Part shown: piece after piece, positions 11,605-63,199 of the stretch | Position numbering within the stretch: the first letter of the stretch is position 1 | Layout of the letters: the number at the start of each line of letters is the position of its first letter | Assembly: GCA_026770705.1 (NCBI GenBank) | Contig: JANJGN010000189.1 | Coordinates: 248,001-312,000, forward strand | DNA from: Isurus oxyrinchus | Taxonomy: Eukaryota | Direction: 5' to 3' | DNA: 64,000 bases | Notes under the pieces: generated by a model | Told to the model about the DNA's origin: nothing | Database searches by the model: none | Seen by the model: only the letters and a program-made list of their open reading frames with translations | Program-made: the position numbers and the translations under genes

Positions 11605-11744
11605 TTAAACAGTCTGTCGATTTCCTTTCACTGTTTGTCTCTCCCAGACACAGACGCCAGCTATAGTGATAACCACAGCCACAAGGAATATCACAGCTCG
11701 TATTCCCAGGATCAGGATCACGTGCAGAATCTCTCCTCCACTGT
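11605..11744 (-). CDS. Gene C terminal TM exon: (D)SGGEILHVILILGIRAVIFLVAVVITIAGVCVWERQTVKGNRQTV*
   Basis: Acceptor ttctttctgtgtgttctctAG, phase 1. Hydrophobic helix with Arg (CGA, 11698-11700) and a 12-aa Tyr-free tail. The ORF track shows the wrong frame. Confidence 0.88.
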
Positions 11745-14700
11745 CTAGAGAACACACAGAAAGAAATCATCACTGACTCTCCGCTTTCAATCTCTCACTC
11801 TGGCTGAACAATCAAGCTTCATATCACTGCAACATTTGCTGTAATATTGACCCATTCACTGGGATTCAATGTGGAATGAATGTTTTCACTGTAAACACTC
11901 TAAGAGTGGACAATCGGAACTTTCTCCTTAGCGTGGAACATTGGTGAGAATGGATCATTGTGCTGTTGGACTCTCTGTCCAATGTTTCTCTCCATCGCTG
12001 TGTACAGGATTGTGCTGTAGAAAATTCTGGAAACGTTTAGTGCAGGGTGGAAATCCATCTCGGACGCGTGTGCGAATCGGGCAGGATCGAGATGGACTCC
12101 CCCACGGTCTTACACACCCCGCTTAATAAACAGTTCCAATCTTTACCCAGAGAGAGGGGAGAATGTGGAACTCGCTCCCACAGGGAATGGTTGAGGTGAA
12201 TAGTAGCAAATTAGGAAGTGAAATTGCTTGAAAAGCTTGGAGATGCAAGGGTTAAGTGTTACCGTGCTACCACTGGTGGGAGAGTGTAACTACAGCGTGA
12301 TGTTTACATAGGCAATCCCCATTATGAACATGGACATCATGTGAAAAATGGGCACTGGAAAGCTGAGAACTTGATGTAAGCTTTTCAGCAACAGGAATTC
12401 CCTTCCTAAACCTCTCCACTTCCCTCTTACTCTCAGATACTCAAACAAAATTTCATACGAAATCACGTAAGGAGGAATTGGGACAGGTGACTGGTCAAAG
12501 AGTTAGATTTCAGGAAGGTTCTTAAAGTAGGATAGAGAGTTGGAGAGGCAGAGAGTATCTGTGAGTATCTCTGTGCATCTGAGTGTCTGTAATAGACTTT
12601 GCAATTTCCATATTCTTCCATAAATATGAAAGGGAACACAAATCCCAGAATCCAGGTCAACTCTCCGGTGCAGCACTGAGGGAGGTCAGGTAATCCACAG
12701 GGGAGTATGTGCTAGTGTGTTTGTTTGTGAGTGTGTCTTTGTGTGTGCTCATAGATGTGGGATTGTGTGTCTGCAGGTGTCTGTTTAAGGCTGGATATTT
12801 ATGTGTGTTTTTGTAGTGTTTCAATCTGAGAGAGATGTTGAAGTTTGTCTTAACTAACGTTCCACAGTGATGGTTATGAACCCCTCCACTGCTCCATGTT
12901 CATTCTCTGAGCACACTGATAGTCTCCAGTGTCCCTGGATGTAATGTGAGGAATCACCAACCACAGCTCATTGTTGGAACTTGTTCTGTTCATTGTGATA
13001 TTCAGATGTCAGGACCGGACTCAACAAGACAGATTGCAGGTTTACCAACAGAAAGTGAAAAACAATTTATATTTAAAGGGAAGAGAGTGCTGGTTAATCA
13101 GCAAGTGGTCTCTGATTGGAGGAGGTGTTGCCATGGAAAATAATGTGTGTGAGATGTAAAGTTTAGACAGCTTGTCTCTTCATTCAGCAACAATCAAATA
13201 AAGATCAGTTAACTTCTATCGACTGTGAAGCACTTTGAGAGGCATGAGAATGTGGACACTGAGAACGGGCTGCACTGTCAGAGGGTCAGCGCTGAGGGAG
13301 TGCTGATGTAGAATGAAGGGTGTCCGTACTTACCTTGCACATTTAGTACGAGGGTCCGCTCCGATGAAACAGATGGATATCTCACTCTGCAGCTGAGTGT
13401 GTGTCCGTGGTGTTTGAGTGATGGGATCAGGGTCAGAACAGAAGTATAGGTCAGAGTGACACCATGCTGAGTTACAGTGTTTGAGACTGATCCAGGTACG
13501 TCAGTGGGAGTGTCCCAGGTTAAGACAGGTGCTGCTGTTCCATTGCACGTTGTGTTGAAGGTGCAGCTTACATCCACAGGCTTTCCTGCAATAATTTCAG
13601 CAGGGAATATCGTGGGTTTATCTGTGAAATCTAACAGACAGAGAATGGATCCTTTTAGAGAAATATAACGTGAAGCATCAGTTCAAATAGAAATCACAGT
13701 CCCACAAGAAAAAGCACTTTTACAAGGATGATATCAGATCTGAGAGATTACAATGATCAGGAGAGAATTTCCTGCTTTGAGACTTTGGTGTTTCTGTCTC
13801 TCAGCTTAATACACGTTCAGTCCGAGACACTTGAACTGATAATAGTGGGTGAGGGTGAAGGAGCAGACCAGAGTTTGGAGTGCACTACCCCATCATTCAC
13901 TCAGCAATCTGGGCCATTTATTACTCTGCAATTTGTGGGAGCTTGCTGTGCGCAAATTGGCTGCTGTGTTTCTCACATTACAACAGTAAATACAATTCAG
14001 GAATCAGCTCATTGGCTGTGAAGTGATTTGGTCCGTGCTGAGGTGGTGAAAGGTGCTATAGAAATGTGAATCTTTCTTCTGTCGCTATGTCAGACTTCGA
14101 GACAGGATTAGAGAGATCGATGGGAGTGGATAACCTGATAACATTGATGGACACAGTCAATACATTTTATCATTGATATTAAAGTGAGTATTAGAGGTTC
14201 CTTTAGGAGTGAACTGGAAGCTATCACCAGGTTATTGAGAATCAGACAGTGTGTTATAATAAGCTGTGTTTTGTGTTAATATGTAAATGTCATAGTTCGT
14301 GTTATTTCCCATTGAGTGTTGAATGTGAATTGGTGAGTAATTATAACACAGCACTTACCAGAAACGTGAAGCTGGGTTACAGGGTAATAGTTATAGCTCG
14401 GACCATTGTCAAATTCTATTCTGAAAAAATAAGGTCCTGCATCTTCCCGTGTGATGTTGTTTATAATCAGGGAACAGTCGCCATCTTTCAGGTCTCCAGA
14501 CAGCCGGGTCCGATGGTGGAACCGTGGTAACTCGTGACTGTGATCCTTGGAGTGAAAGGCTATAGACGATGTTCTCCATTCCTCATTATTAAGCCAGACT
14601 CCACCTCGCGGTTGGTTTTCCAGACACGATGGATAACTGTAATGACATGGAATCTGTACACAGGAACCTTCCTGCACTGTCACCTCTCGTGGAGTGTCAC

Positions 14701-17700
14701 CTTTCCACTCTTGCGAGGGTTCAGCTGGGGAGAGAAATCTCAATATTTAACTCTGAATGGTTTGTGGATCCACTGAACCCGATATTTACAGATGAGGCTG
14801 AATTGGGGGGATGGTCAATACTGAGGAGAAAGGCAACAAATTATATTGTCAGGAAGAATAGAAAAACAGGATATAATTTAAATGGAGACAGGCTGCAGAA
14901 TGCAGTACAGAGGGATCTGGGTGTCCTTGTACATGAATCACAGAAAGTCAGCATTCAGGAACACCACGGAATGAGGAAGGCAAGTGGAATGTTGGTCTTT
15001 ATTGCAAAGGGATGGAGTATAAAAGGAGGGAAGTCTTGCTACAGCTGCACAGGGTGAGATTGTATCAGGAGCAGTGTGTACAGTTCTGGTCTCCTTACTT
15101 AGGGAGGGATAGACTTGCATTGGAGGCAGTTCAGAGGAGGTTCACTGGGCTGATTCCTGGGATTAAAGGGTTTGTCCTGTGAGGAAATGTTGAGCATGTT
15201 GGGCCTGTATCCATTGGAGTTTAGAAGAATGAGGGGTGACATTATTGAAACATATCCGATTCCGAGGGGGCTTGACAGGGTGGATGCTGGGAGGATGTTT
15301 CCCCCTCGTGGGGGAATCTAGAACCAGGGAGCACAGTTTCGGAATGAGGGCTCTCCCATTTAAGACTGAGGTGAGGAGGAATTTCCTCTCTCAGAGGGGC
15401 GCTAGCCTGTGGAATTCTCTTCCCCAGAGAGCAGTGGAGGCTGGGCCATTGAATAGACTCAAGGCTGAGTGAGGCAGGTTTTTGATCGACAAGGGAGTCA
15501 AGGGTTTGGGGGACAGGCAGGAAAATGGAGTTAAGGCCACAACCAGATCAGTGAGAGCCGGCTCGAGGGGCCGAATGGCCTGCTCCTGTCCCTATTTCTT
15601 ATGTTCCTACATTCTTACCTTCTTAAAATATTAAAGCTGCAGAATAAACATGCAAGTGACTGACCCGCTCGACCCACCTTCCATCTGGGGGTCCCATGGG
15701 GAGGACCCTTCCTGAGCCAGGTCCACCAGCCAACATGGTCTGGATCCGAGCACAGGAGACATGGGGGGGAGTGACTAACAGGCTCCTTGTGACAGGCCCC
15801 GTCTGTCCAATGGCTGGCTTTCAGCTGCCAAGGCCAGAGTGGTCCTTGCTAAAACCGGCTCAGGACAGGCCAGGACCCCTGTGCAGGCCCCCTCCAGCGC
15901 TGCAGCCTCTGTACAAACCCCTCACGCGCTTGTGGAGAGACACAAACAAGGCTGCACATTACCGAGGAGAATCCCCTCTACGGACTAAGGGGCTGACTCG
16001 TCACCTTAAACTCCGCAAATGAGGAGGCTCTCGCTCGGTATCGGGGCTTGGCATTCGCTCAATAAAAATAATCAAATGACATTTTGGTCAGAAATCGAAG
16101 GAGGTTGCACATTCCCTCAAAAATAAGACTCAAGCTGGGGTCGAGGGTCAAAGGGCAACAACTTATATTTACACAACAACTTTAACATGACAAATCACCC
16201 CAAGGTGCTACACAGGAGCGTCATAAAACAAAGTATGTCACCCAGACACATGTGGAGATATTAGCGACAGCTGACCAGAAGAGGTCGGTGTTATGGAGAA
16301 TCTTCAAAGGGGGATGAAATGGATAGTGAGAGAGAGACAGAGAGATAGAGAGAGTGAGAGAGAGAGATGGAGAGGGGTTGAGGGAGGTTATTACAGAGCT
16401 CGGGTCCCAGGCAGCTGAAGGCACGGCCGCCGATGTTGTAGTGATGGGACCGGGGGATGGTCAAGAGGCTGGAATTGGATGAGCACAGAGACCTCAGAGG
16501 GTTGGAGGAGCTGGAGGAGGTTACAGAGATAAGGATGGTTGTAGTGATTGGAGGAGTTACAGAGATAGGGAGGGTTGTAGGGTCTGGAAAATTTAAGAGA
16601 GATTGGGAGAGTGTAGGGTATGGAGGAGTTCGCAGAGATAGAGAGGTTTGTAGTGGCTGGAGGAGGTTGCAGAGATTGGTAGGTTTGTTGTGCAGGATGA
16701 ATTTACAGATATAGGGAAGCGGTGGAGGCTTGAAGAGGTTACAGAGATAGGGAGGGTTGTAGGTACTGGAGGAGGACGAGGAGATTACAGGGATAGTGAG
16801 GAAACAAAGATGAAAATTTGGACATTGAGACTTTGCTTGACCAGGAGCCAGTCTCGGTCATCGAGCAGAGCGGGTGATAAGGGAATGGGACTTGGTGTGA
16901 GTAAGGACGTGGTCAGCAGTTTTGGATGGCCTCAAGTTTATGGAGTGTAGAGCGTGTGTTGGAACAGTCGAGTCTGGAGGTAATGAAGGCGTGGATGAGG
17001 GTTTCAGCAGCAGATGAGCTGAGACAGGGTGATGTCGTGCGATGTTACGGAGGTGGAAACAGACGGTGTTAGTGAGGGCGCAGATATGAGGCCGGAAGCT
17101 CATCTCAGGATCAAATGGGACAACAAAGCTGTGAACAGATTGGCTTCAATCTCAGAGAGCTGCCAGGGAGAGGAATGGAGTTGGTAGCGAGGGAACAGAG
17201 TTTGGAGCGGGGAATGAAGACAATGGCTTCAGTCTTTCCAATATTTAATTGGAGGGAATTTCTGCCCATCCAGTACTGGATGTCGGATAAGCAGCCTGAT
17301 AATTTAGCAGCAGTGGAGGAGTCGAGAGAGGTGGTGGTGAGGTAGAGCTGGGGATCCTCAGTGGACAGGTGAAAACTAACACTGTTCAGATGATGCTGCA
17401 AAGCCATTGCAAGTGATTCTCTGGCTACGATGAGATGGATAAGAATGGAGCCAGGGGAGAGCAGTCCCACCCAGCTGGACGACAGTGGAGAGGTGTTGGA
17501 GGAGGATGGTGTGGTCGAGCGTGTCAAAGGCTGCAGACAGATCGAGAAGGACGAGGAGGGAAAGTTGACCTTTGTCACAGTCACACAGGATGCCATTTGT
17601 GACCTTGATAAGAGCTGTTTCAGCACAGTGGCTGGGGTGGGAACCTGATTGGAGGGATTCAAACATGGAGTGCCAGGAAAGATGGGAACGGATTCAGGAG

Positions 17701-20700
17701 ATGGAAACACGTTCAAGGACTTTGGAGGGGAACGAGAGGCTGGAGATGGGACGGGGGTTTACACGGACAGTGTGAGGGGTGGAAGGTGTAGTGGGGAGGA
17801 GATACTTCACTCAGGGGGGAGGTGTCATCACCCCTCAGCTCGGTTTAGGTTACAGCTATGATGTGGATACAATCACACACAATAAGCTCATGGATCTGGG
17901 AGCAGAAATAGACAAATCATTAAAAATAGTGACGCTGGTTAACACGGCCAAAAAACAAGCAAATCAAACACTATTATTTCCCATTGAGTGTTGGATGTGA
18001 ATTGGTGAGTAATTATAACACAGCACTTACCAGAAACGTGAAGCTGGGTTACAGGGTAATAGTTATGGCTCGGACCATTGTCAAATTCTATTCTGAAATA
18101 ATAATATCCTGCATCTTCCCGTCTGATGTTGTTTATAATCAGGGAACAGTCGCCATCTTTCAGGTCTCCAGACAGCCGTGTCCGTTGGTGGAACCGTGGT
18201 AACTCGCGATTGTGATTCTTGGAGTGAAAGGCTATGGTCCCTCTAGACCTTGTATTCCATGTATTCCATGTGTACCGTTTCACGTACCAGATTCCGACAC
18301 GTGCTCGCCCTACTACATGTGCTGGATAACTGTAGTTACATGGAATCTGTACACACGAACCTTCCTGCGCTGTCACCTCTCGTGGAGTGTCAACTTTCCA
18401 CTCTTGTGACAGTCCAACTGGGGAGAGAAATATCAATATTTAACTGTGGATGGTTTGTAGATCCACTAGACTCGATATCCACCCCCTCCTTCACGGGGTC
18501 AGAGTGGCTGCAGTGTGGACCATCTACAGGACACACAGGGATCTCCCCAATGGTTCACAATGGATGGAAGAGAATCCTGGACACAAAAGCGGAAATATTC
18601 ATGCTACATTGGCTCATGGTGCTCAGGACCCTATTTGTGTACAAACCTGCTCTGCAACAGAACTGAAGTTGGGGAAAATCCATTTGGAATTCCACTGTCC
18701 AGGGCATTGGGTTAACTTGCTAAGTTTGTTTTAAATCTAACATTTATTTTTGGTCTGTTGCCTTAAAGGAAGTGTAACTGGGAGTCAGGTTAATTAGGAA
18801 TTTTAGGAGTTATTATAGCAGTCATTGTAGTCTTACGTACGTGCTTGAAATCTTTTATTTTGATGACAAATATTTTAATTTATTGTTTTAAATCTCTAAA
18901 TGTCTTGATGGAGTTATTGCTTCTGAATTCAGTGCACAATCATAACAAATACAAATTGCAAAATCATTATGACAGTGTGACCAAGTTTCTCTCATGGACT
19001 TGGTCTGCCTGGCACACATCACCTGCCAAGTGATAACACTGTTGTAATATGCCTTTCAGGGACAGCAGCATGACATCACTCGAGGGGAAGTGTGTCATGT
19101 GATTTTTAGGAGTTGGGCTTGGCTTAAGGAAGCTCTCTGTGTATTTGTGTGCGTTAGGCATAAGGTCTATCTTTAAGTTCAAGTTTAGTTTGTATTTCTG
19201 TATTTGGGTGTTTAGAAAAGGGGGAACTTGACGTAAAAAGAAGCCAGCATTCCATTGAGGTTTTATGACTGTTGAAGGGAAGTCAAAACAAATACAAGGT
19301 GTAAGAAACTGTGCTGTTGCCTAGCAACAGTGATCCATAGGGAAGGACCTACAGAGACCGAGAAAAACAGAAAAGTACTTTCAGTTCTGTTGAAAGGAGT
19401 TGCCAGGAGAAGCAGCAAAGGAGCGGGACAGATAGTCAGTCCCAAAGTAAAGATGAAGCGAAAACCATCGAGTGGAACAGGAGAAAGGGCCCAAGAAAAC
19501 CTTCTAGTCAAATCTGTAAAAGGCCCTGTTAAGTGAAGTTAAGAGTGAGGAGCAGAAGAAGGCTTCAAGCTTAAAGGAAGAAGCAGCAGGACACAGGCCT
19601 AAAGCAAAATAGGCTTGTGAGAAGCCAGAAGATCCTAGGAGACACCACAGGTTGGTGACTCATTACTACGGCCATGTGAAGCCATGGTGTTCCATTGACA
19701 CGGCTGAGCATTGGAGAGACAGGGCGTGGAAGGAAGGCTGAATGCACGTGGCGATCCAGGGGGCAGGAACATGGGAAGGAGAGTTTGAAATAGTGAAAGT
19801 GGACCCGTGTGGAAGGTGTCTGAGTGAAAGTGTCATGTTGGAGAAGATTCCAAAGTGAGTTCTTGGAGAGTGGAGATTGGAAACCCTCATATGAAAGAAG
19901 CTTTTCAGTGAGACTGGTTGGCTCACAGTGTAACAAGCGTCTGGGGACAGATGAGACATAGAATTTGTTTCAAGTGGGCTCTGCCACTTGGTTTAAGAGT
20001 GTGGTGTCCCTGACCACAGGTCGTCTATTGGTTTACATCGACTGTGTAGTTAGTGTGAACATGAGAGTATAAGATAGTTATTGTAACTTGTGTTATCTTT
20101 GTGAATCTGTATATATCTGCAAAGATATAGGTCTGGGTGAAGGAGTAATGTAATATAGTTTGTCTTTCCTAGTTTAATAAATGTTTTATTCTTTTGTTAG
20201 AAGTTCATCAGATGATTCCTGTGACTCTGTTCAGTAGCCGCACTCCACATTCCTAAATAAAAAATAAAAGTTAGGACCTATCAAACTGAGTTCCACCCTG
20301 GGATCTGACTTGCCCAGTAGTAACATCAGCTGGGATGATAACACCATCCAGTCCAAGTTTCACTTTGGCCTGTGAGCAGAACACAGCTCACAGTTTGGCT
20401 GCAGGTGTCTCCCAGCTTTCTATCCTTGTATATCTGTTCTCATGTCCCCATTCTAAATAAATGAACCCACAATGTATTTACCCAATTCCGAATCAGTGGC
20501 TGGTGCCTTTATATCATTATAAAAACACAACATGGTGATCAGCGGTGGCCAAACATTCTGGCAGCAAGATTCAGTACAGGTATGACGTGGTGAACAGCCT
20601 TAGATCGAGATACATGACATGAGACGACCCTCGAAACTTTGGTCAGACCACAACAGAGACATAGCATCAGAGAGGGTTGAAATCGCAGTGTACTGACTGC

Positions 20701-23743: not shown

Positions 23744-24029
23744 TGTCCACTCCCAGATATTTCCCCAGCTTCTAACTCTGAAGTTCTGAAAGAGAAAGGA
23801 GTTAATGAGACCTCACCTCTTGTCCGACAGCTCTCGAGAGATCAGAACTGCTTTTAGACAATATCTTCACAGACTAATTTGATTCTCTGTGGGATGATAG
23901 GTGCTCTGCAGAGAGTTACAAGGCTTTAAGAAAGAAAAGCAAGGAAGGACTTGCATTTCCATAGCACCTTTCACCTCCTCAGGGTGTCCCAAAGCTCATG
24001 TCTCTGCAATTCCTCATCCCTTTGGTGCC

Positions 24030-24311: not shown

Positions 24312-24772
24312 GGGTCAGTACTGAGGGAGTGCTGCACTGTCGGAGGGTCAGTACTGAGGTAGTGCTGCACTGTCAGAGTGTCAGTACTGAGGGAGTGCTG
24401 CACTGTCAGAGGGTCAGTACTGAGGGAGTGCTGCACTGTCAGAGGGTCAGTACTGAGGGTGTGCTGCACTGTCAGAGTGTCAGTACTGAGGGAGTGCTGC
24501 ACTGTCGGAGGGTCAGTCCTGAGGGAGTGCTGCACTGTCGGAGGGTCAGTACTGAGAGAGTGCTGCACTGTCGGAGGGTCAGTACTGAGTGAGTGCTGCA
24601 CGGTCAGAGTGTCAGTACTGAGGGAGTGCTGCACTGTTGGAGGGTCAGTACTGAGGGAGTGCTGCACTGTCGGAGGGTCAGTACTGAGGGAGTGCTGCAC
24701 TGTCAGAGGGTCAGTACTGAGGGAGTGCTGCACTGTCAGAGGGTCAGTACTGAGGGAGTGCTGCACTGTCAG
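24312..24772. repeat. 33-bp SINE-derived tandem array (~14 copies)
   Basis: Near-perfect units visible. Confidence 0.92.
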
Positions 24773-25029
24773 AACTGCCATACTTCAGATGATGTTTGAA
24801 ATTAGCAACATGCCTCGTTTAAAATTCTAAATCATCAGCTCAATATAAATAGATTAGTACTGTATGTTTCACTTTACTGCAAATTGTTCATGGTTTCATT
24901 TCCTTGTTAACCAGGCTCATGTGATCACTATTTTTAAATAATGTTTGTTATTTGGAACTACAAACAATTTAAAGTTTTAAATTTTTATTGCACTCTATAA
25001 TTATATTACCTCTGATATCTGTCTCTACA

Positions 25030-51900: not shown

Positions 51901-54900
51901 TTCCTACATTCTTACCTTCTTAAAATATTAAAGCTGCAGAATAAACATGCAAGTGACTGACCCGCTCGACCCACCTTCCATCTGGGGCTGGAGGAGGTTA
52001 CACAGATAGGGAGGTTTGTGGGGGCTGGAGGAGGTAACAGAGATAGGGAGGGCTGTAGATACTGGAGGACATTACGCAGATAGGGAGGGTGGTAGGACCT
52101 GGAGGAGGTTGCAGAGATAGGGAGGGCTATAGGGATTTGAGGAGTTTATGGAGATGGGGAACGTGTAGGGACTGGAGGAGGCTGCAAGGGCAGAGAGGGT
52201 TTTAGGGGCAGGAGGAGTTTACAGGGATAGGAAGAGTTGTAGGGGCTGGACGGATTGCAGAGGTAGGGAGGGTTGGAAAGGCTGGTGGAGGTTTCAGAGG
52301 TAGGGAAGGCTGCAGGGACTGGAGGAGTTTACAGAGATGGAGGAGTTTTTGGGGCAGGATGGGGTTACAGAGATAGGGAGGGTTGTAGGGGCAGGACGAG
52401 GTTACATAGATATGGAGTGTGGCTGGGGCTGAGGGAGGCTACAGAGATAGGGAGGGTTATAATGGCTGGAGGAGTTACAGAGATGAAGGAAACTCTTAGG
52501 GACTGGAGGAGGTTACAGAGATAGGGAGGGTTGTAGTGGGCTGGAGGAGGTTACAGAAATATGAAGGGTTGTAAGAGATGGACCAGCTTACAGAGATAGG
52601 GAGAGGTATTCGGTCTGGAGGAGTTTGCAGAGATAGTGGAGGTTGTTAGGACTGGAGGAGGCTACAAATATCGCGAGGGTTATCGGGGCTTGAGGAGGTT
52701 AAAGAGATAGGGAGGGGTGTTGGGTCCGGAGGAGTTTGCAGTGATAGGAATGGTTTTCGGGATTGGAAGAGAGTACTGAGATAGGAGGGTTGTAGGGACT
52801 GGAGGAGTCTCCTGAGATAGGGAGGGTTGTAGGGACTGGAGGAGGCTCCTGAGATAGGGAGGGTTGTAGGGACTGGAGGAGGCTCCTGAGATAGAGAGGG
52901 TTGTAGGGACTGGAGGAGGCTCCTGCGATAGGGAATGTTGCCGTGGATGAAGATAAAGGAGGAGATTACTGTAATAGGGAGGAAAAATATTCAAAAATTT
53001 GGACATTGAGACTTTGCTTGACCAGGAGCCAGTCTCGGTCATCGAGCAGAGCGGGTGATAAGGGAACGGGACTTGGTGTGAGTAAGGACGTGGTCAGCAG
53101 TTTTGGATGGCCTCAAGTTTATGGAGTGTAGAGCATGTGTTGGAACAGTCGAGTCTGGAGGTAATGAAGGCGTGGATGAGGGTTTCAGCAGCAGATGAGC
53201 TGAGACAGGGTGAAGTCGTACGACGTTATGGAGGTGGAAATAGACAGTGTTAGTGAGGGCGCAGATATGAGGCCGGAAGCTCATCTCAGGATCAAATGGG
53301 ACAACAAAGCTGTGAACAGATTGGCTTCAATCTCAGAGAGCTGCCAGGGAGAGGAATGGAGTTGGTAGCGAGGGAACAGAGTTTGGATCGAGGAATGAAG
53401 ACAATGGCTTCAGTCTTTCCAATATTTAATTGGAGGGAATTTCTGCCCATCCAGTACTGGATGTCGGATAAGCAGCCTGATAATTTAGCAGCAGTGGAGG
53501 AGTCGAGAGAGGTGGTGGTGAGGTAGAGCTGGGGATCCTCAGTGGACAGGTGAAAACTAATACTGTTCAGATGATGCTGCAAAGCCATTGCAAGTGATTC
53601 TCTGGCTACGATGAGATGGATAAGAATGGAGCCAGGGGAGAGCAGTCCCACCCAGCTGGACGACAGTGGAGAGGGGTTGGAGGAGGATGGTGTGGTCGAG
53701 CGTGTCAAAGGCTGCAGACAGATCGAGAAGGACGAGGAGGGAAAGTTGACCTTTGTCACAGTCACACAGGATGCCATTTGTGACCTTGATAAGAGCTGTT
53801 TCAGCACAGTGGCTGGGGTGGGAACCTGATTGGAGGGATTCAAACATGGAGTTCCGGGAAAGATGGAACCGGATTCGGGAGATGGAAACACGTTCAAGGA
53901 CTTTGGAGGGGAAAGAGAGGCTGGAGATGGGACGGGGGTTTACACGGACAGTGTGAGGGGTGGAAGGTGTAGTGGGGAGGAGACACTTCACTCAGGGGGG
54001 AGGTGTCATCACCCCTCAGCTCGGTTTACGTTACAGCTATGATGTGGATTCAATCACACACAATAAGCTCATGGATCTGGGAGCAGAAATAGACAAATCA
54101 TTAAAAATAGTGACGCTGGTTAACACGGCCAAAAAACAAGCAAATCAAACACTATTATTTCCCATTGAGTGTTGGATGTGAATTGGTGAGTAATTATAAC
54201 ACAGCACTTACCAGAAACGTGAAGCTGGGTTTCAGGGGAAACGTTATGTCTCGGACCATTGCCAAATTTTATCGTGAAAAAATAAGATCCTGCATCTTCC
54301 CGTCTGATGTTGTTTATAATCAGGGAACAGTCGCCATCTTTCAGGTCTCCAGACAGCCGGGTCCGATGGTGGAACTGTGATAACTCGCGACTGTGACCCT
54401 TGGAGTGAAAGGCTATAGACCATTTAGACCATTTGTTCTGTATGTATCTTCTCATTTTCCAGATTCCGACCTGTGGTTTCTTTACCAAATCTGATGGATA
54501 ACAGTAATGACATGGAATCTGTACACACGAACCTTCCTGCGCTGTCACCTCTCGTGGAGTGTCACCTTTCCACTCTTGTGACAATCCAACTGGGGAGAGA
54601 AATATCAATATTTAACTCTGGATGTTTTGTTGATCCACTAGACTCAATATCCACCCCCTCCATCACTGGGGCACAGTGGCTGCAGTGTGGAGCATCTACA
54701 GGACACACAATGAACTCCACAAGGTATCACACCAGATGGAAGAGAATCCTGGACACAAAAGCGGAAAAGTTCATTCTACATTGGTTCATGGTCCTCAGGA
54801 CCCTGTTTGTGCACAAGCCTGCTCTCCAACAGAACTGAAGTTGGGGACAATGCATTTGGAATTCCACTGTCCGGGGCATTGGGTTAACTTGCTGATTTTG

Positions 54901-57900
54901 TTTTAAATCTAACATCTATTTTTGGTCTGTTGCCTTAAAGGGACTGTAACTGGGAGTCAGGTTAATTAGGAATTTTAGGAGTTATGATAGCAGTCTTGTA
55001 GTTATGTATGTGCTTGAAATCCTTTATTTTGATGACAAATATGTTAATTTATTGTTTTAAATCTCTGACGGTATTGGTGGAGTTATTGCTTCTGAATTAA
55101 GTGCACACATCTCATAATAAATACAAATTGCAAAATCATTATGATAGTGTGACCAGGTTTCTCTCAGGGACTTGGTCTGCCTGGCACACATCACCTGCCA
55201 AGTGATAACACTTTTGTAATATGCCTTTCAGGGACAGCAGCATGACATCACTCGAGAGGAAGTGTGTCATGTGATTTTTAGGAACTGGTGTTCGCTTAAG
55301 TAAGTTCTATGTGTATTTGTGTGCGTTAGGCAAAAGGTCTATCTTTAAGTTCAAGTTTAGTTTGTATTTCTGTATTTGGGTGTTGAGAAAAGGGGGAACC
55401 TGAGTTAAAAAGAAGCCAGCATTCCATTGAGGTTTTATGACTGTTGAAGGGAAGTCAAAACAAATACAAGGTGTAAGAAACTATGCTGTTGCCTAGTAAC
55501 AGTGATCCAGAGGGAAGGACCCACAGAGACAGAAAAAAACAGAAAAGTACTTTCAGTTCTGTTGAAAGGAGTTGCCAGGAGAAGCAGCAAAGGAGCGGGA
55601 CAGATAGTCAGTCCCAAAGTAAAGAAGAAGCCAAATCTATCGAGTTTGACAGGAGAAAGGGCCCAAGAAGACCTTCTAGTCAAATCTGGAAAAGGCCCTG
55701 TAAAGTGAAGTTAAGAGTGAGGAGCAGAAGAAGGCTTCAAGCATAAAGGGAGAAAGCAGCAGGACACAGGCCTAAAGCAAAATAGGCTTGCGAGAAGCCA
55801 GAAGATCCTAGGAGACACCACAGGTTGGTGACTCATTACTACGGCCATGTGAAGCCATGGTGTTCCATTGACACGGCTGAGCATTGGAGAGACAGGGCGT
55901 GGAAGGAAGGCTGAATGCACGTGGCGATCCAGGGGACAGGAACATGGGAAGGAGAGTTTGAAATAGTGAAAGTGGTCCCTTGTGGAAGGTGTCTGAGTGA
56001 AAGTGTCATGTTGGAGAAGATTCCAAAGTGAGTTCTTGGAGAGTGGAGATTGGAAACCCTCATAAGAAAGAAGCTTTTCAGTGAGACTGGTTGGCTCACA
56101 GTGCAACAAGCGTCTGGGGACAGATGAGACATAGAATTTGTTTCAAGTGGGCTCTGCCACTTGCTTTCAGAATGTGGTGTCCCTGACCACAGGTCGTCTA
56201 TTGGTTTACATCGACTGTGTACTTAGTGTGAACAAGAGAGTATAAGATAGTTATCGTAACTTGTGTTCTACTTATGAATCTGTAAAGGTATAGATCTGGG
56301 TGAATGAGTAATGTCATATAGTTTGTCTTTCCTAGTTTAATAAATGTTTTATTCTTTTGTTAGAAGTTCATCAGATGACTCCTGTGACTCTGTTCAGTAG
56401 CCGCACTCCACATTCCTAAATAAAAAATAAAAGTTAGGACCTATCAAGCTGAGTTCCACCCTGGGATCTGACTTGCCCAGTAGTAACGACAGCTGGGATG
56501 GTAACACCATCCAGTCCAAGTCTCACTTTGGCCTGTGAGCAGAACACAGCTCACACAGTTTGGCTGCAGGTGTCTCCCAGCTTTCTATCCTTGTATATCT
56601 GTTCTCATGTCCCTATTCCAAATAAATGAACCCACAATGTGTTTACCCAATTCCGTATCAGTGGCTGGTGCCTTTATATCATTATAAAAACACAACATGG
56701 TGATCGGTGGTGGCCAAACATTCAGGCAGCAAGATTCAGTACAGATATGACGTGGTGAACAGCCTTAGATCGAGCTACGTGACATGAGACGATCCTCGAT
56801 GCTTTGGTCAGACCACAACAGAGACACAGCATCAGAGAGGGTTGAAATCGCAGTGTACTGACTGCTCAGGAAACCTTTGAAGACACAGTGACGGGAAAGA
56901 GCTCAAGTAAAGAGCTGGGGAGCAGACGGATCCCTCGTGGTGGGATTACAGCACACGGCCTGTAGGTCAGTGAGTGGGACAGTGTGTATCGCCAGGACCA
57001 GCAGCAGGTTAGCTCAGTCAGGGAAGGCGAGTGACCAGGGTGTGGGCTGGATCGATAGTGAGCGAGGGAGAGTCAAACACACAAAAACCATTATAAAAAT
57101 CAGCCCAGAGAAGTTAGTGATTATAACGGGCAGCTTCGAGATTGCTGAACAGCAAATTGAATAAAAAACAAAGACTCCATTACTCCGTGGTGTGTTCCTG
57201 CCACAACCCGTCTTCGTGGGCGGAGCTTCGGAAAAGCGCACGAAAGGGGCTAAAGCGACACTCATCCCAGATCCTGTAGGAGAAGGAAGGTCAAAGGAAT
57301 ATTGTCAGAATGTCCACTAAATTCCCCAGTTTGAACTGGGATGTAGCTGACCGACTATCTGAATTCAGAATGTTTAAACAGCGTACAGAGCTCTGGTTTC
57401 CTGATTCAGGTGTGACTGAACCAGACGAACAAGCCATAAAAATTCACCTCGCGATTGGGAATGAAGGTCTACACAGGCTGAACACGTCAGGATTAACAGC
57501 AGAAGAGCAAAAGGATCCCCAATAGATATGGACGATATTGGAAGACAGGTTCAGAATCAGGTTAAACTCCATATTCATCAACTAGAGTTTATGTCATTTC
57601 ATCAGCCTACACAATCCATAGACCACTTCATCAGCCGATGTAGAGAAAAGGGTACGCACTGTGATTTCAAACACAGAGTCTGCAGACAGAGTTTTTGAGT
57701 TGGTGATCACATCCACTCCCATGGAAGCCTTCCAGAAAGATCTGCTAGATAAGACCAAAACCTATAGCATTGAAGAGTTACTCAAGGATGGACATAAATA
57801 TGAAGTGATCCTCGCAGGTCAACAAGCTTACAGGTCCTCAATACAACATCAATTGTTGACACACTCACTAGAACATCCAAACCTAGTGAGACTTGTGGAA

Positions 57901-59913
57901 GGTGTGGCCTTCTGCAGGCACCAAGGAAATGCCCAGCTTTCCACCAAGCCATCAAGGCTTGTGGCAGAAAGGGCCATTGACAGCGGCAGGGCACTAGAGC
58001 AAAGGCTGATGCAGCTACAAAGAGCCGTGCGCTGATCCAAACAATCCCTGCACAACGGGGAAACTTCAAGCAATAAGGATGACCATCCGCTATCCCATCA
58101 GGAACATATACATGTGGTGACTGACAAACCAGGAATTGGCGATGATGTACACGACGAGACTAGGAGCGGTGATCGATATTCCACCTCTCACACATATCCT
58201 GACGTGGCTTGCCAATAAATTGTGGATTGTGGTCTTTATTGATCTCTCTGGGCACATCAAATAAACTGAAAATGTTCCCATAGGGGTGGGATTTTCTGGC
58301 CCCACCCACTTCCAAGATTGTCTGGTCCGGCTGAAAGCCAATGGATTTATGTCTGTCCCAGTCTCAGAAACTATCCCATAAACACAGTTCATGACATAAC
58401 ATTGAAATATGCAGAAAGATTCAACAATATTGGCAGTTTCATGGGAGCTGCAACATTACACCTGCAGGAGAATGCAAGTCTGTCAGACTCCTTGCATTAA
58501 AATTAATACAATCCAACTTTGCCACGCTATCTTGAGCCTTAAATGGCCAATAATTTCTATGCCTTCCAGGTTCATTTGCTCTCTTCTAATTTTGGCTGTG
58601 CATCTCTCTCTGTTGAACTTCCTCTCGGGATCCCATCCCCTGCTATATTACTTTAAAGCCTTCTCAATTGCATCAAGGGTGTAATGTCAATTGAAACCAG
58701 GGACAACATCAAAGAATGACAATCCCACAGATCAATGTGAGCAATTAAAGAAACCTCCAGACAATTTTGCCACCACAAGATCTCGACATAACAGCAGATT
58801 ACCTCTACGCTTTAGAGACTCAAATATTCAACAGATCTATACACTTATGTAATTGTCAAGAAATATGAAAATGATACCAGGAACCTCTTGTTCCCTGTCC
58901 TTCTCAAAGATCCATCCCTGCAGCAGGAGCCTGAAGAGTTACTGAAGAGTGGGTCTTAATTTATCAGATTGTAGAATGATCCGGAATAGAAGGATGCCAT
59001 TTGGCCCATCGAGCCTGTGCTGGGCCTTTGAAAGATCTGTCCAATTAGTCCCACTCTAACCTCTGCTCTCTCCTCCACAGCCCTGCAAAATGTCCCCTTC
59101 AAGTATTTATCTAGTTCCCCTTCTGAAAGTTCCTGTTGAATCTGCTGCCACCAGCCTTTCAAGCAGTGAGTCAATGGTCTCTCTCTGAGCTGCAAAGTGC
59201 TAATGTTCTGAGAACTTTAAACACTGCAGCAGATCAGAGACAATCATGATAACTCAGAATATTTGACAGTTTTACACACAGACAGCTTTACCTTTCTTCT
59301 CTCTTTCAGTTATCTTGCTCCCTTATTGAAGTATCTAGCATGGTGAGAATGGACAGTAAGTGTGACACTGAACAGCCTGTCTATTCTAGGAGCTGCTGTG
59401 TTGTCTTCATGGGAAATTCTGACTAAAATCAGCAATAGACACAAAATTTCAGGGCATTGTTATCCGAGTCCCAGCATCAGGATAGACTTCATCCCCCAGT
59501 TGGTATCCCTGATTCTCTATTCAGCCGATCGCTCCCCTGTCACTGGATGAACTACACTGCCTCCCAGTCCAGCAATGACTCAAATTTCAAATTCTCATCA
59601 TCGATTTCTTACCCCACCATCCCCCCTCTACACTCCCAATCCCTGTAACCTCCTCCAACCCTAAAACCCTCTGAGATCTCTGCTCTCCTCCAATTCTGCT
59701 GTCAGACAGGGAGTCAGTGTATATCAGTGAGCACAGGGGTGATGGGTGAATGGGACTTGGTGTCAGTTTGTACACTGGATCACTGCTGAATCGGTTCCCA
59801 ATCACACTCAATAAGAATGATCTTTTACAAAGACTATTAGCCATAAACCTGTCCGAGCTGATGATGTTATTACCTTGGAGAAGTGACAGGAGGAAGTAGG
59901 ATTTCCCGATCAT
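33701..59913 (-). CDS. Gene B: putative inhibitory Siglec-like receptor (MAG-type scaffold), leader-V-V-C-C-C-C-C-TM-cytoplasmic tail, 881 aa with either tail cassette
   Basis: Eleven coding exons per isoform with consistent GT-AG sites and phases (1,1,1,1,1,1,1,1,2,0), 2646 nt open; Tyr motifs in the last exon. Confidence 0.82.
35611..35692 (-). CDS. Gene B juxtamembrane cytoplasmic exon, distal copy (K)RKTAMEERVSGTSDIALNPSPLSVKHQ
   Basis: Acceptor ttattgcAG, donor CAG|GTACAG; 82 nt, phase 2/0. Confidence 0.75.
35820..36290 (+). mobile_element. LINE 3' fragment, duplicated at ~38450-38920
   Basis: LDTIQDKAARLI...SFTVAG..SWNSL. Confidence 0.75.
36838..37086 (-). CDS. Gene B terminal exon, proximal copy: ...EEFLYANPQV...ETEYAQIRFENN* (proximal ITIM degenerate, ITSM-like kept)
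   Basis: Same acceptor, phase and length as 33701-33949; open frame; minus-strand AATAAA at 36308-36313. Confidence 0.82.
   Translation of the reverse strand, partial: GKQNVLITEPWNTTRDTTSEGETPAPRVPSEGAVGGDAGLGNPGKPEEFLYANPQVLRVSSGDGSVHREEETEYAQIRFENN
38238..38319 (-). CDS. Gene B juxtamembrane cytoplasmic exon, proximal copy (K)RKTAMEERVSGTSDIALTPSPLSVKHQ
   Basis: 82 nt, phase 2/0; matches the phase-2 donor of the TM exon. Confidence 0.82.
39043..39139 (-). CDS. Gene B TM exon (G)RDSSKWTVGLFTTGIMLSVFLAGIFIFICVR(K)
   Basis: Acceptor gtttttacAG, donor AA|GTAAGT; uncharged hydrophobic helix; not in the ORF track. Confidence 0.88.
39570..39716. repeat. AT-rich 37-bp tandem repeat, ~4 copies
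   Basis: gtaatctatgtaacatttatatataatatttatcaat starting at 39570, 39607, 39644, 39681. Confidence 0.92.
40061..40354 (-). CDS. Gene B membrane-proximal Ig exon (MAG domain-5 type)
   Basis: YKPEISQQSECTRRSEGVTCICVANSNPPGDLTW...ASCSVQNPHG; C-x8-CxC pattern; 294 nt, phase 1/1. Confidence 0.88.
41311..41586 (-). CDS. Gene B C2-set Ig exon
   Basis: YPPQET...EGSNITLTCSSESVPPISHYTWF...DAGFYCTARNPVG; 276 nt, phase 1/1. Confidence 0.92.
41915..43127 (+). mobile_element. Penelope-like element fragment (GIY-YIG endonuclease)
   Basis: NIIYCIHCSQCGLLYIGDTKHRLGDR...VACHFN...KLEEQHLIFR; related terminal pieces at ~3150-3300 and ~10225-10322. Confidence 0.88.
43128..43440 (+). mobile_element. RTE-type LINE 3' fragment
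   Basis: RISWMDRKTNEW...RERK..KYG....TTIEG and an (AAAC)n tail. Confidence 0.6.
43459..43740 (-). CDS. Gene B C2-set Ig exon, copy 2
   Basis: APRNSSITSLD...IEGNSAVIICSVESFPASNLTW...DTGDYQCVAENEHG; 282 nt, phase 1/1. Confidence 0.92.
44721..45002 (-). CDS. Gene B C2-set Ig exon, copy 1
   Basis: DAPQNLSFTSLD...DTGDYLCVAENEHG; 282 nt, phase 1/1; near-identical to copy 2. Confidence 0.9.
45940..46985 (-). mobile_element. Degraded Gypsy integrase fragment
   Basis: LTMMDMTTRFPEAIPLGTITAKVV...FFIHYGLPLEIQSDQGS (rve core). Confidence 0.8.
47110..49165 (+). mobile_element. CR1 LINE ORF2 3' portion, degraded
   Basis: KSFYKYVK, YFGSVFTKED, LQLYKVLVRLH, ERVQRRFSRLIPG and CR1 3' tail; many stops. Confidence 0.9.
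49537..49833 (-). CDS. Gene B Ig C-type exon (Siglec domain-2 type)
   Basis: 297 nt, phase 1/1; about 7 nt and 3 aa differences from 13334-13630 by manual count. Confidence 0.92.
50647..51015 (-). CDS. Gene B V-set exon V2
   Basis: DKPSQEW...DAGTYIFRIE; 369 nt, phase 1/1; essential Arg present. Confidence 0.93.
54212..54589 (-). CDS. Gene B V-set exon V1 (essential Arg replaced by Thr)
   Basis: VGLSQEW...DAGSYFFTIKF; 378 nt, phase 1/1, open frame. Confidence 0.92.
59874..59913 (-). CDS. Gene B leader exon MIGKSYFLLSLLQ
   Basis: Paralog of 23704-23743; donor CAAG|GTAAT. Confidence 0.85.
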
Positions 59914-60363
59914 TGTCCACTCCCAGATATTTCATAAGCTTCTGACTCTCAAACTCTGAAAGAGAAAGGAGTTAATGAGACCTCACCTCTTGTCCGACAG
60001 CTCTCAAGAGATCAGAACTGCTTTTGGACAATGTCTTGACAGACTAATTTGATTCTCTGTGGGATGATAGGTGCTCTGCAGAGAGTTACAAGGCTTTAAG
60101 AAAGAAAAACATTGAAGGATTTGCATTTCTATAGCACCTTTCACCACCTCAAGACGTCCCAAAGCTCATGTCTCTGCACTTCCCTCATCCCTTGAGCTAG
60201 AAAGATGTTCTGTACAACAGACTTGAGTCTCACACCCAGATCTCAATAATCAGTAGAAATCTTTCAAAGGCATCAATCATTGGAATCTGTCTTCATAAAG
60301 TCACAACATCAACAAAGGACGGTGTTGGTGGTGGAAGTGAATTCCAATCATTCCGTTACTTAC

Positions 60364-60510: not shown

Positions 60511-60729
60511 CAGTGAGAAGATCGAGGATGTTTTGTGCTCTCAGCAAAACGTTTACCATGTGATGATCTGTCAGCTCAAATTTGGGCAGCTGTAGTCATG
60601 AAGCTTCTCCATTGGCTCCGTGGGTTTAGACTCCTCCCCCTCACCTCGGAGGCTGAAACTCAGGCGATAAGAGTTCCTAATACAGGTCTCTGGCCTTATG
60701 ATACATTTCAACGATCCCTGTTATCATTA

Positions 60730-62120
60730 CGGAGGGAGTGCTGCACTGTCAGCGGGAGTTTACTGTGGGATTGCTGCTCTATCAGAGGGTCAGTACTGAG
60801 GGAGTGCTGCACTGTAAGAGGGTCAGTACTGAGGGAGTGCTGCACTGTCGGAGGGTCAGTACTGAGGGAGTGCTGCACTGTCATAGGGTCAGTAATGAGG
60901 GAGTGCTGCACTGTCAGAGGGTCTGTACTGAGTGAGTTCCGCACAGGTGGAGGGTCAGTATTGAGGGGGTGCCGGACTGTGGGAGGGTTTGTACTGACGT
61001 AGAGCGGAGTGCGAGGAGATATCCTTTCATGACAAAGTTTAACTGGAATTTATTTAAACAGAATTTAAACAGTACTGTGTGTTATTGCAAAAGAAAGGAT
61101 TTGAGGAACTAACTCTTGTTCCCGTAAGCCTAAAAATAATTTTCACTGATTTCTATGATTTAGCATTGAAACCTCCCTCTTTGGGCACCAGTCTTGATTG
61201 AAACAACTCGCACAGCACTGTGGGAGGGTGAGTACTGAGGGAATGCTGCACTGTGGGAGGGTGAGAACTGAGGGAGTGCTGCACTGTGGGAGTGTGAGTA
61301 CTGAGGGAGTGTTGCACTGTGAGAGGGTCAGTACTGAGGGAGTGCTGCACTGTGGGAGTGTGAGTACTGAGGGAGTGCTGCACTGTGGGAGTGTGAGTAC
61401 TGAGGGAGTGCTGCACTGTGGGAGAGTGAGTACTGAGGGAGTGCTGCACTGTCAGAGGGTCAGTAATGTGGGAGTGCTGCACTGTCACAGGATCAGTAAT
61501 GAGGGAGTGCTGCACTGTCACAGGATCAGTAATGTGGGAGTGCTGAACTGTCGGCGGGTCTGTACTGAGTGAGTTCCGCACAGTCGGAGGGTCATTATTG
61601 AGGGGGTGCTGGACAGTGGGAGGGTTAGTACTGAGGTAGAGTGGAGCGTGAGGAGATATCCTTTCATGGCAAAGTTTAACTGGAATTTATTTAAACAGAG
61701 AGTCTTGTACTGTGTGTTATTGCAAAAGAAAGGATTTGAGGAACTAAGTCTTGTTCCCGTTAGCCTAAAAATAATTTTCAACGATTTCAATGATTTAGCA
61801 ATGAAACCTCCCTCTTTGGGCATCAGTCTTGATTGAAACAACTCACACAGCACTTCAGGAGAGTGAGTACTGAGGGAGGGCTGCACTGTGGGAGAGTGAG
61901 TACTGAGGGAGTGCTGCACTGTGGGAGCGTCAGTACTGAGGGAGGGCTGCACAGTGGGAGGGTGAGCACTGAGGGAGTGCTGCACTGTGGGATCGTCAGT
62001 ACTGAGGGAGTGCTGAACTGTTGGAAGGTCAGTAGTGAGGGAGGGATACAGTGTCAGAAGATCAGTCCTGTGGGAGTGCTGCACTGTCAGAAGGTGTGTA
62101 CCGAGGTAGTGCTGCACACA
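60730..62120. repeat. 33-bp SINE-derived arrays inside a ~630-bp higher-order duplication
   Basis: Spacer 61015-61215 is repeated at ~61650-61850, each copy followed by 33-mers. Confidence 0.85.
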
Positions 62121-62339
62121 GCCAGACAATGCCGTGGTTATGATGTGTCCACACAGCAGGACTGGGGAGCACCAGGTATAAGGAAAAGTTTCAGCTTGCT
62201 GAGGAGAAGAAGGAGAATCTCTCGTTCCAGGTTTCTCTCCGTACATTAAGAAGCAGGCATGCCGATGTTTCATTGCACTCTGTCTGCTGATGGGAGTCCG
62301 CTTGGAAATTGCTGTTTGTGCTGATGGAAAGAATAAACT

Positions 62340-62950
62340 TTTCATAAATCGAGGGATTGAGTACAAACACAGGGAGGTTATGCTGAACATTTATAAAGCT
62401 CTGGTTAGGTCACAACTAGAGTATTGTGTCCAGTTCTGGTCTCCTCACTTTGGGAAGGAAGTGAGGGTCCTTGAGAGGGTGGGGAGGAGATTGAGCAGAA
62501 TGGGTCCAGGGATGAGGGATTTTAGCTACAAGGTTGGGTTGGAGAAGCTGGGGTTGTTCTCCTTGGAGCAAAGGAGATTGAGGGGGGACCTGATCGAGGT
62601 GTACAAGATGATGATGGGTTTAGATACGGTAGACAAAGAGAAGCTGTTGCCATTAGCTGATGGGACAAGGACTGGGGGACACAGATTGAAGGTTTTGGGC
62701 AGAGGGGGATGTGAGGAGGAACTTTTTTAAACAGCGAGTGGTAATGAGCTGGAACTCACTGCCTACGAGGATGGTGGAAGCGGAGACGATGAACAATTTC
62801 AAAAGGAAATTGGATGGACACTTGAGGGGAAATAAACTCACAGGGATACGGGGATAGAGAGGGGGAATGGGACTGAGTGGATTGCTCTACAGAGAGACAG
62901 CATGGACTCAATGGGCTGAATGGGCTCCCACTGTGCTGGAATGCCTCTCT
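62340..62950 (+). mobile_element. CR1 LINE 3' fragment
   Basis: YKALVRSQLEYCVQFWSPH...LFSLEQRRLRGDLIEVYK. Confidence 0.9.
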
Positions 62951-63059
62951 GATACGAAGGTGATTTTAACCAGGACACTGACCAGTTTCATTGCAACTTA
63001 ACCCAACATCACACATTATTTGTCCGCACTGACTGACCAGATTGTTGCTGTACAAAGCT

Positions 63060-63199
63060 TCAAACAGTCTGTCGACTTCCTTTCACTGTTTGTCTCTCCC
63101 AGACACAGACTCCAGTGATAGTGATAACCACAGCCACAAGGAATATCACAGCTCGTATTCCCAGGATCAGGATCACGTGCAGAATCTCTCCTCCACTGT
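63060..63199 (-). CDS. Gene A terminal TM exon: (D)SGGEILHVILILGIRAVIFLVAVVITITGVCVWERQTVKGSRQTV*; remainder presumably beyond the window
   Basis: Paralog of 11605-11744 with the same acceptor, Arg codon at 63153-63155 and stop position (TGA vs TAA). Confidence 0.85.

Follow-up and report, generated by a model that had tools for sequence, protein, structure and literature searches.

Tandem Siglec-type receptor genes with inhibitory-type and activating-type ends in a shark genome

Three Siglec-type genes, here called A, B and C, lie head to tail on the minus strand of a 64-kb window from Isurus oxyrinchus (the whole stretch of DNA that was analysed, 64,000 nucleotides of contig JANJGN010000189.1). 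An earlier note, made from the letters of this DNA alone, had proposed that these genes form an activating-inhibitory-activating series in a probable shark genome. The minus strand does show the order A-B-C, and lamniform sharks supply the nearest proteins, namely Carcharodon carcharias (great white shark) and Cetorhinus maximus (basking shark). Every exon named in that note is present on the minus strand, with AG/GT borders and closed phases.

Gene C, which ends in a transmembrane (TM) segment carrying an Arg residue (TM-Arg), spans 23743 to 11605 on the minus strand and has five coding exons for 409 amino acids. The internal exons, each bordered by AG and GT, are all phase 1-1, and they give a closed model. 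The parts of the gene, including the remnant of an exon encoding an immunoglobulin (Ig) domain, are as follows:

23704 to 23743, minus strand: leader exon, coding part (MIGKSCFLLSLLQ), with the ATG at 23743 and a phase 1 donor, GTAATA
18031 to 18417, minus strand: V1 exon, Siglec-type V-set, F-strand Arg kept (YYYFRIEF)
14359 to 14724, minus strand: V2 exon, a V-set of Siglec type that keeps the Arg (YFFRIEF) and has an additional Cys in its BC loop
13334 to 13630, minus strand: C2-set exon of the Siglec domain-2 type, with C-x5-C (CTFNTTC)
12851 to 13010, minus strand: 3' half of an Ig3-type exon, a frameshifted remnant within the last intron
11605 to 11744, minus strand: terminal exon of 140 nt, encoding a TM segment with Arg and His, a 12-residue Tyr-free tail and a stop ending at 11605

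The leader exons were traced from loose ends of RNA contigs, followed by a pattern search and reading of the DNA; they lie 5.3 kb upstream of V1. The terminal exon translates as D-SGGEILHVILILGIRAVIFLVAVVITIAGVCVW-ERQTVKGNRQTV-stop. After D-SGGE comes the hydrophobic stretch ILHVILILGIRAVIFLVAVVITIAGVCVW, with the Arg (codon 11698-11700) in its outer third, and the tail ERQTVKGNRQTV has 12 residues and zero Tyr, just as first described. Gene A had been assigned the same kind of ending, and the one part of it that falls inside the window bears this out, with 135 of 140 nucleotides (96%) identical to the gene C exon and peptides that differ at two of 45 residues:

63060 to 63199, minus strand: gene A terminal TM-Arg exon

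Gene B, for which the earlier note had given a neutral TM segment and tails with tyrosine motifs, spans 59913 to 33701 on the minus strand and closes at 881 amino acids with either of two tail cassettes. Its exons read accordingly, with an uncharged TM segment and tails that carry a tyrosine-based inhibitory motif of the immunoreceptor type (ITIM) or a motif resembling the immunoreceptor tyrosine-based switch motif (ITSM):

59874 to 59913, minus strand: leader exon, coding part
54212 to 54589, minus strand: V1 exon, F-strand Arg replaced by Thr (YFFTIKF)
50647 to 51015, minus strand: V2 exon, Arg kept (YIFRIEF)
49537 to 49833, minus strand: C2-set exon
44721 to 45002, minus strand: Ig3 exon, I-set-like
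43459 to 43740, minus strand: Ig4 exon, a tandem copy of Ig3 (97% identical in the exon, 91% with flanks)
41311 to 41586, minus strand: Ig5 exon
40061 to 40354, minus strand: Ig6 exon
39043 to 39139, minus strand: uncharged TM exon (WTVGLFTTGIMLSVFLAGIFIFICV)
38238 to 38319, minus strand: cytoplasmic exon, cassette b
36838 to 37086, minus strand: tail exon 2, with FLYANP, then TEYAQI (ITSM-like) and a stop
35611 to 35692, minus strand: cytoplasmic exon, cassette a
33701 to 33949, minus strand: tail exon 1, with a canonical ITIM (LLYANI), then ITSM-like TEYAQI and a stop

The two cassettes stand in tandem, each consisting of a cytoplasmic exon and a tail exon, and in tail 2 only TEYAQI has the canonical form. 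The TM segment matches that of great white and basking shark models. Tail 1 is of a type kept in Cetorhinus (basking shark model P0004) and tail 2 of a type kept in Carcharodon (great white models P0015 and P0158). Since both tail types are kept in other lamniforms, both cassettes are old, and both appear to be in use. Against tetrapod CD33-related tails the gene B tail gives phmmer E values between 0.05 and 1.2 when 164 proteins are searched; homology between them was rejected, the likeness being at the level of motifs and not significant.

Close ahead of its stop (36838-36870), tail exon 2 also contains a possible donor, ATCAG|GTTTGA, in a phase that fits the acceptor of cytoplasmic exon a (35692). 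A great white RefSeq model, P0184, is spliced from tail exon 2 to cytoplasmic exon a, placing two tail cassettes in series. By the same splice gene B could produce a long tail with four tyrosine motifs.

The assembly gaps of the locus were examined first, and none is crossed by a reading frame. One gap (25930-26549) is intergenic, with the 5' end of gene C on one side and the 3' end of gene B on the other, and another (45414-45898) lies inside the gene B intron between C2 and Ig3. A third (44523-44712) begins 9 nt past the GT donor of the Ig3 exon, whose end is at 44721; because this donor is intact, the gap is intronic. The low sides of the two intronic gap groups are homologous (45295-45413 against 44399-44518, 89%), and a third Ig3-type unit may lie concealed within gap 45414-45898 or close to it, so the two Ig3-type exons counted in gene B are a minimum. 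The borders of the intronic gaps carry a TG-rich microsatellite.

Genes B and C had been said to share their leader, V1, V2 and C exons. Self-comparison of the window traces this to a segmental duplication of 10.7 kb, whose limits lie 32 nt beyond the C2 exon on the downstream side and about 300 nt beyond the leader on the upstream side, while a second, shorter repeat contains the TM-Arg exons of genes C and A:

13302 to 24022: gene C copy of the segmental duplication, 93-94% identical to its partner at 49505-60193
49505 to 60193: gene B copy of the segmental duplication, partner 13302-24022
11338 to 12205: gene C TM-Arg module of about 870 bp, 94% identical to its partner at 62787-63660
62787 to 63660: gene A TM-Arg module, partner 11338-12205

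Such similarity could be created by an assembly that placed two haplotypes, or a collapsed repeat, side by side, and the region does hold five assembly gaps, with the near-duplicate Ig3 and Ig4 exons beside gaps. Nonetheless, the B and C copies differ by 6% over 10.7 kb and in 26% of V1 residues, and they lead into different downstream exons. A haplotype or assembly duplicate was rejected on this high divergence together with the different exons. The likeness of Ig3 and Ig4 extends into their flanks, and relatives of these genes hold up to ten such tandem domains. We therefore give an assembly artefact almost no credence.

The anatomy of gene C suggests how it arose. The Ig3-type remnant in its last intron is 93-94% identical to Ig3 and Ig4 of gene B (44713-44872 and 43453-43611), with the frame broken, and the sequence adjoining the TM-Arg module on its 3' side (11193-11337) matches at 79% the downstream flank of tail exon 1 in gene B (33503-33651). 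Given this remnant and the retained 3' flank of gene B type, the simplest reading is that gene C was derived from a B-like, inhibitory-type gene that lost the whole stretch between mid-Ig3 and the final tail exon and received the TM-Arg module in its place.

Repeats of several kinds surround these modules. Arrays of a 33-bp satellite occur in both orientations at 1062-1398, 3575-3808, 10325-10873, 13269-13305, 24312-24773, 34070-34420, 37232-37649 and 60724-62117. These include both cytoplasmic-to-tail introns of gene B and the interval between the last exon of gene A and the leader of gene B. A 37-bp piece of the satellite coincides with the 3' breakpoint (13302) of the B/C duplication, and an array lies 300 bp past its 5' end; the arrays may be a substrate for exon shuffling. 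A second satellite, with a 37-bp unit, is found at the start of the window (217-999), in the V1-V2 introns of genes C and B (16497-16774 and 51984-52934) and between Ig5 and Ig6 of gene B (40665-40966). Between genes C and B stands a (TGGGGG)n-like array (28404-29857; 1.45 kb, 69% G+C, GC skew 0.77), a long run with G-quadruplex potential. Open reading frames that resemble, by eye in the list of frames, reverse-transcriptase fragments of the long interspersed nuclear element (LINE) type lie between and inside the Siglec genes (7177-8879, 31960-32427, 47144-48765 and 62290-62730).

Splicing of the predicted exons was followed in contigs placed on 11300-14800 (3501 letters) and drawn from four runs, each of a different study, that together represent two organisms (organism A and organism B). 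The contig totals per run, 69-122 million letters, are transcriptome-sized. Each of the four runs contains both joints, 11744/13334 and 13630/14359, at precisely the borders predicted for the exons; read on the plus strand the joints are CT..AC, equivalent to GT..AG on the minus strand. Three of the four runs cover the exons and leave several intron bins empty. The observed splice skips the Ig3-type remnant. Because the 10.7-kb duplication is shared, the TM-Arg exon is present twice and the predicted C2-to-TM-Arg and V2-to-C2 joints occur in RNA contigs, a chance origin of the pattern is excluded. The stretch 11300-14800 ends short of V1, and the loose ends listed are leader-to-V joins only.

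Three further features of these contigs concern the same stretch. High depth at 12882-13010 was considered as a new exon of gene C and rejected, the Ig3-type remnant there drawing contigs from paralogues. Depth is also high at 13172-13405, because the 33-bp satellites are widely transcribed. Finally, two runs of organism B skip 242 nt of the 3' untranslated region of the TM-Arg exon (11340-11583). Since the ends of this skip are non-canonical (GT..CA on the minus strand), an indel between species is more likely than an intron.

The assignment of these genes to the Siglecs, also made in the earlier note, agrees with exon-by-exon database searches. All four V exons of genes B and C score above the Pfam cut-offs for V-set and Ig_CD22, and the Siglec matches in PDB range from 1e-11 to 1e-14. 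The best phmmer match of gene C V2 is Siglec-5 (5.5e-14), followed by CD33, Siglec-8, Siglec-10, MAG, Siglec-7 and sialoadhesin, and that of gene C V1 is sialoadhesin (2e-13), followed by CD33, Siglec-7, -8 and -10, MAG and Siglec-15. By bit score, these V1 and V2 matches give no separation between CD33-related Siglecs on the one hand and MAG or sialoadhesin on the other. The C2 exon scores as Pfam C2-set_2, with domain 2 of MAG, CD33, Siglec-10 and Siglec-5 as PDB matches. An AlphaFold2 model of gene C V1 has a predicted local distance difference test score (pLDDT) of 86.9 and a predicted template-modelling score (pTM) of 0.82. When this model was compared with PDB by Foldseek, all matches listed, to rank 40, were Siglec V domains, with target-normalised template-modelling scores of up to 0.90.

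The hallmark residues are in place as well. In the PDB alignments two B-strand Cys, the E-strand Cys, the F-strand Arg and the N-terminal Trp fall on their Siglec counterparts; specifically, SCVQIPC and DCSL line up with the cysteines of Siglec-5 and CD33, and the F strand reads YFFR in place of YYC. As aligned, the domains have the Siglec cysteine pattern of a B-E intrasheet pair, an extra B-strand Cys of the kind that makes an interdomain bond, and no B-F pair. Among 34 sequences C26 and C90 are invariant and C21 is nearly so. The F-strand Arg is aligned in both V domains of gene C and in V2 of gene B, while V1 of gene B has Thr, and its position (residue 108 of gene C V1) lies outside the columns listed as ≥90% conserved in alignment A1. 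Thus, by every test run, namely sequence, predicted fold, cysteine pattern and F-strand Arg, genes B and C are Siglecs. In their B-C loops the two V2 domains also carry a further Cys (YPSC and YPLC; 14620-14640 and 50910-50930), which V1 lacks, and V1 of gene B has a different extra Cys (HYCYP).

These genes belong to a large family. A HMMER scan with V2 gave 33 cluster representatives below 1e-30, and a word-based search gave at least 100 relatives, all of which, among the matches listed, come from sharks, rays and skates. The genera among these matches are Carcharodon, Cetorhinus, Mustelus, Scyliorhinus, Chiloscyllium, Stegostoma, Hemiscyllium, Rhincodon, Heterodontus, Heptranchias, Pristiophorus, Pristis, Hypanus, Hemitrygon, Mobula, Rhinoraja, Amblyraja and Leucoraja. 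RefSeq names these relatives Siglec-5, -6, -8, -10, -11, -12, -13, -14 and -15, CD33-like and MAG-like, with one TM-Arg model named Siglec-14.

Both kinds of ending recur in this family, and the two architectures are conserved across shark orders. A local screen of 122 fetched relatives found an uncharged TM segment with ITIM or ITSM in 53, a TM-Arg end in nine (with the junction …VQ-D/Y-SGGE… as in gene C), a TM segment and a tail with other tyrosine motifs in 25, and a TM segment with a Tyr-free tail in 10. The other 25 have no TM segment and are therefore partial or secreted. The TM-Arg carriers are Carcharodon, Scyliorhinus canicula, S. torazame and Chiloscyllium, four species in three shark orders, and great white models of the form V1-V2-C2-TM-Arg are 93% identical to the TM exon in the window, so that the window derives from a close lamniform relative. 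Word searches with the TM-Arg region returned two and three proteins, few five-residue words being shared. Inhibitory counterparts with the TM segment and tails of gene B are found in Carcharodon and Cetorhinus.

An unrooted IQ-TREE analysis of 56 V domains, made without MAG and Siglec-15 rows, yields an elasmobranch clade (94/97) and a tetrapod CD33-related clade (100/100). A third group of CD22, sialoadhesin and teleost domains is looser (91/80, drawn open). The V1 domains of genes B and C group with a Cetorhinus V1, V2 of gene B groups with a Cetorhinus V2 and one Carcharodon V domain, and V2 of gene C falls at the base of the elasmobranch clade with no firm partner. From this tree the V1/V2 duplication appears to be older than these species, and the family appears to have expanded within elasmobranchs. 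The lineage-specific origin put forward in the earlier note fits both the recent duplication that made B and C and the elasmobranch clade of V domains. The domain phylogeny it had called for is addressed by this tree, in which the elasmobranch and tetrapod CD33-related clades stand apart among domains that include those of CD22 and sialoadhesin. No conserved marker genes for synteny with the CD33-related cluster were identified in the window, and no synteny comparison was made.

Literature searches found no papers on Siglec families of shark, elasmobranch, cartilaginous fish or catshark. The suggestion that the system had not been described therefore holds for papers; it does not hold for RefSeq, which lists such models in many sharks and rays. 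The present analysis adds an account of how a module was replaced in gene C and, for this locus, the splice joint in RNA.

The ligands of these receptors are probably sialylated glycans, which would be held by the F-strand Arg of the V domains. A receptor that is Siglec-like in shape only, with a non-sialic-acid ligand such as a protein, could present the same fold. The missing Arg in gene B V1, the tandem V domains, which are unusual for Siglecs, and the position of the family outside every tetrapod Siglec group in the V-domain tree all point that way. Yet the Arg and the N-terminal Trp fall on ligand-contact residues of sialoadhesin in three V domains out of four, and the best fold matches of the V1 model are ligand-bound Siglec domains. 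A non-sialic-acid ligand thus seems improbable to us.

Taken together, we consider it likely that the window holds part of a tandem cluster of elasmobranch-specific Siglec-type receptors built from interchangeable exon modules, in which gene B is of inhibitory type and genes C and A are of activating type. Gene B, the long form, combines two V domains with a C2 domain, no fewer than four further Ig domains and an uncharged TM segment, and either cassette supplies its ITIM and ITSM-like tail. Upon phosphorylation, the tyrosines of this tail would recruit SHP-type phosphatases and so dampen the cell. Gene C would have arisen from a B-like gene when the module of about 870 bp supplied a single exon encoding TM-Arg and the 12-residue tail, and the same module closes gene A. 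Unable to signal alone, the products of C and A would pair through their membrane Arg with an Asp-bearing dimer of an adaptor that contains a tyrosine-based activation motif of the immunoreceptor type (ITAM), leading to activation.

A number of points weigh against this proposal, the first of which concern the RNA. The kind of run is recorded as RNA only by guess, although the exon-only coverage and canonical joints argue for RNA. Over the TM exon the contigs of organism A carry the letters of gene A, while those of organism B carry L10Q, R35G and N41S, exactly the great white RefSeq letters; over C2 and V2 the contigs carry gene B letters. What these contigs show is therefore splicing in very close paralogues or orthologues, and it is not proven for this copy of gene C. 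The condition that would have refuted the earlier note, absence of any transcript joining 13334 to 11744, does not hold: the joint is seen in four runs, in contigs whose letters fit close paralogues or orthologues better than gene C. Contigs in run X1 that are 98-99% identical over the private intron of gene C give only a hint that gene C itself is transcribed. Expression of gene B and the V1-to-V2 splice are predicted from RefSeq models of relatives. Similarly, adaptor pairing, SHP recruitment and sialic-acid binding are predictions from architecture. A 2014 survey of Fc receptors, the only source on ITAM adaptors in cartilaginous fish that our literature search found, reports no FcR-gamma chain in sharks (PMC4016189), and no adaptor gene lies within the 64-kb window. 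Finally, genes B and C may not share a ligand, because V1 differs at 33 of 125 residues and V1 of gene B has Thr in place of Arg.

The lack of gene C's own letters in the RNA contigs at several sites, together with the dead Ig3-type remnant inside the gene, would also be expected if C and A were decaying by-products of duplication, either pseudogenes or untranslated transcripts with no role. However, gene C has an open frame in all five coding exons, its splice sites are canonical and its phases close, and the observed splice bypasses the remnant. Moreover, C2 and the TM-Arg exon are under purifying selection, with a ratio of nonsynonymous to synonymous change (dN/dS) of 0.26 for C2 between B and C and 0.36 for the TM-Arg exon between C and A, and the gene C architecture is kept in four other shark species of three orders. 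Decay accordingly strikes us as quite improbable.

A more serious rival to the proposed cluster of opposing receptors accepts the architecture and denies the functional pairing: B and C would be mere neighbours in a modular family whose ectodomains and ends are freely shuffled, each with its own ligand. The paired ectodomains of the earlier note bear directly on this question, and they stand in part. The leader is 94% identical in nucleotides between B and C, V2 is 93.2% identical and C2 97.6%. V2 keeps 105 of 119 aligned residues, with two short indels and a dN/dS of 0.64, and C2 keeps 95 of 98 residues. The membrane-distal V1, by contrast, is only 87.6% identical against 94.3% for the flanking introns. 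Expressed as differences, the introns stand at 5.7%, the V1 exon at 12.4% (p 6e-7), V2 at 6.8% and C2 at 2.4% (p 0.011). V1 has a dN/dS of 1.13, and the changes at its 33 residues (92 of 125 are the same) gather in the loops from B-C to C-C' as well as in the F-G region, and include the Arg-to-Thr replacement that leaves gene B V1 without the sialic-acid Arg. Relatives with one to six V domains and many different ends also fit free shuffling. Nevertheless, V2 and C2 are still close, B and C are adjacent and come from one duplication, and quick divergence of the ligand face is also typical of paired receptors under pathogen pressure (PMC6288428). We regard this absence of pairing as unlikely, though it is a rival to be taken seriously, and we hypothesize that B and C would act as a functional pair with opposite signalling modes.

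A further, tentative version of the modular-cluster reading, somewhat less likely than not, is that elasmobranchs evolved a large Siglec system of their own apart from mammals. In such a system a mobile TM-Arg module would convert inhibitory-type genes into activating ones, V1 would race apart between the two forms under pathogen pressure, and the module would signal through an adaptor, in a lineage for which a lack of FcR-gamma was once reported.

Paired Siglecs are known in which a member with an ITIM and an ITIM-like motif in its tail is matched by one with a basic TM residue and a short tail, as in Siglec-5/14 and Siglec-11/16 (PMC6288428). Like the primate pairs Siglec-5/Siglec-14 and Siglec-11/Siglec-16, the shark genes are adjacent and combine related Siglec ectodomains with opposite signalling ends, and, as in the mammalian pairs (PMC6288428), the activating member is derived from the inhibitory type. 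Unlike in primates, there are two tandem V domains, the distal of which has strongly diverged, whereas the primate one is homogenised by gene conversion. In addition, the shark TM-Arg end forms an independent module of 870 bp that recurs in many members of the family, and the family has its origin inside elasmobranchs. With 33 of 125 V1 residues different, the shark pair is looser than Siglec-5/14.

Two V-set domains are also found in primate Siglec-12 (Siglec-XII), which in humans has lost the essential Arg in one of them (PMC6288428), and it is because of their two V-set domains that RefSeq names many shark models 'Siglec-12'. The tandem V arrangements arose separately, each set grouping with its own lineage in the V-domain tree, and shark relatives reach six V domains. 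With the tetrapod CD33-related Siglecs the shark genes share a V-set plus C2-set organization, a proximal ITIM (LxYAxI/L) and a distal TEYxxI/V, as well as clustering and fast evolution; in contrast, the shark V domains fall outside the tetrapod clade and the likeness of the tails is confined to motifs. The creation of an activating gene through a swap of TM module has a parallel in macaque activating KIRs, in which an ectodomain gene recombined with the TM/tail region of another gene and the Arg in the TM segment selects the adaptor (PMC8102735). Those receptors belong to another Ig family and use another TM module, and the macaque adaptor was found experimentally to be FcR-gamma, not DAP12 (PMC8102735).

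Work on teleosts has concluded that fish genomes hold only Siglec-1, CD22, MAG and Siglec-15, with no CD33-type inhibitory Siglecs (PMC7226832). This statement rests on bony fish. Cartilaginous fish hold a large, fast-evolving Siglec family with both inhibitory-type and activating-type members, and consequently the 'brake and counter-trap' logic of Siglec-5/14 and Siglec-11/16 either dates from early jawed vertebrates or has arisen more than once. The locus also shows a route from an inhibitory to an activating gene, in which a remnant exon and a retained 3' flank mark the replacement of a module. The locus makes testable the identity of the shark adaptor, the binding of sialic acid by the V domains and an arms race on V1.

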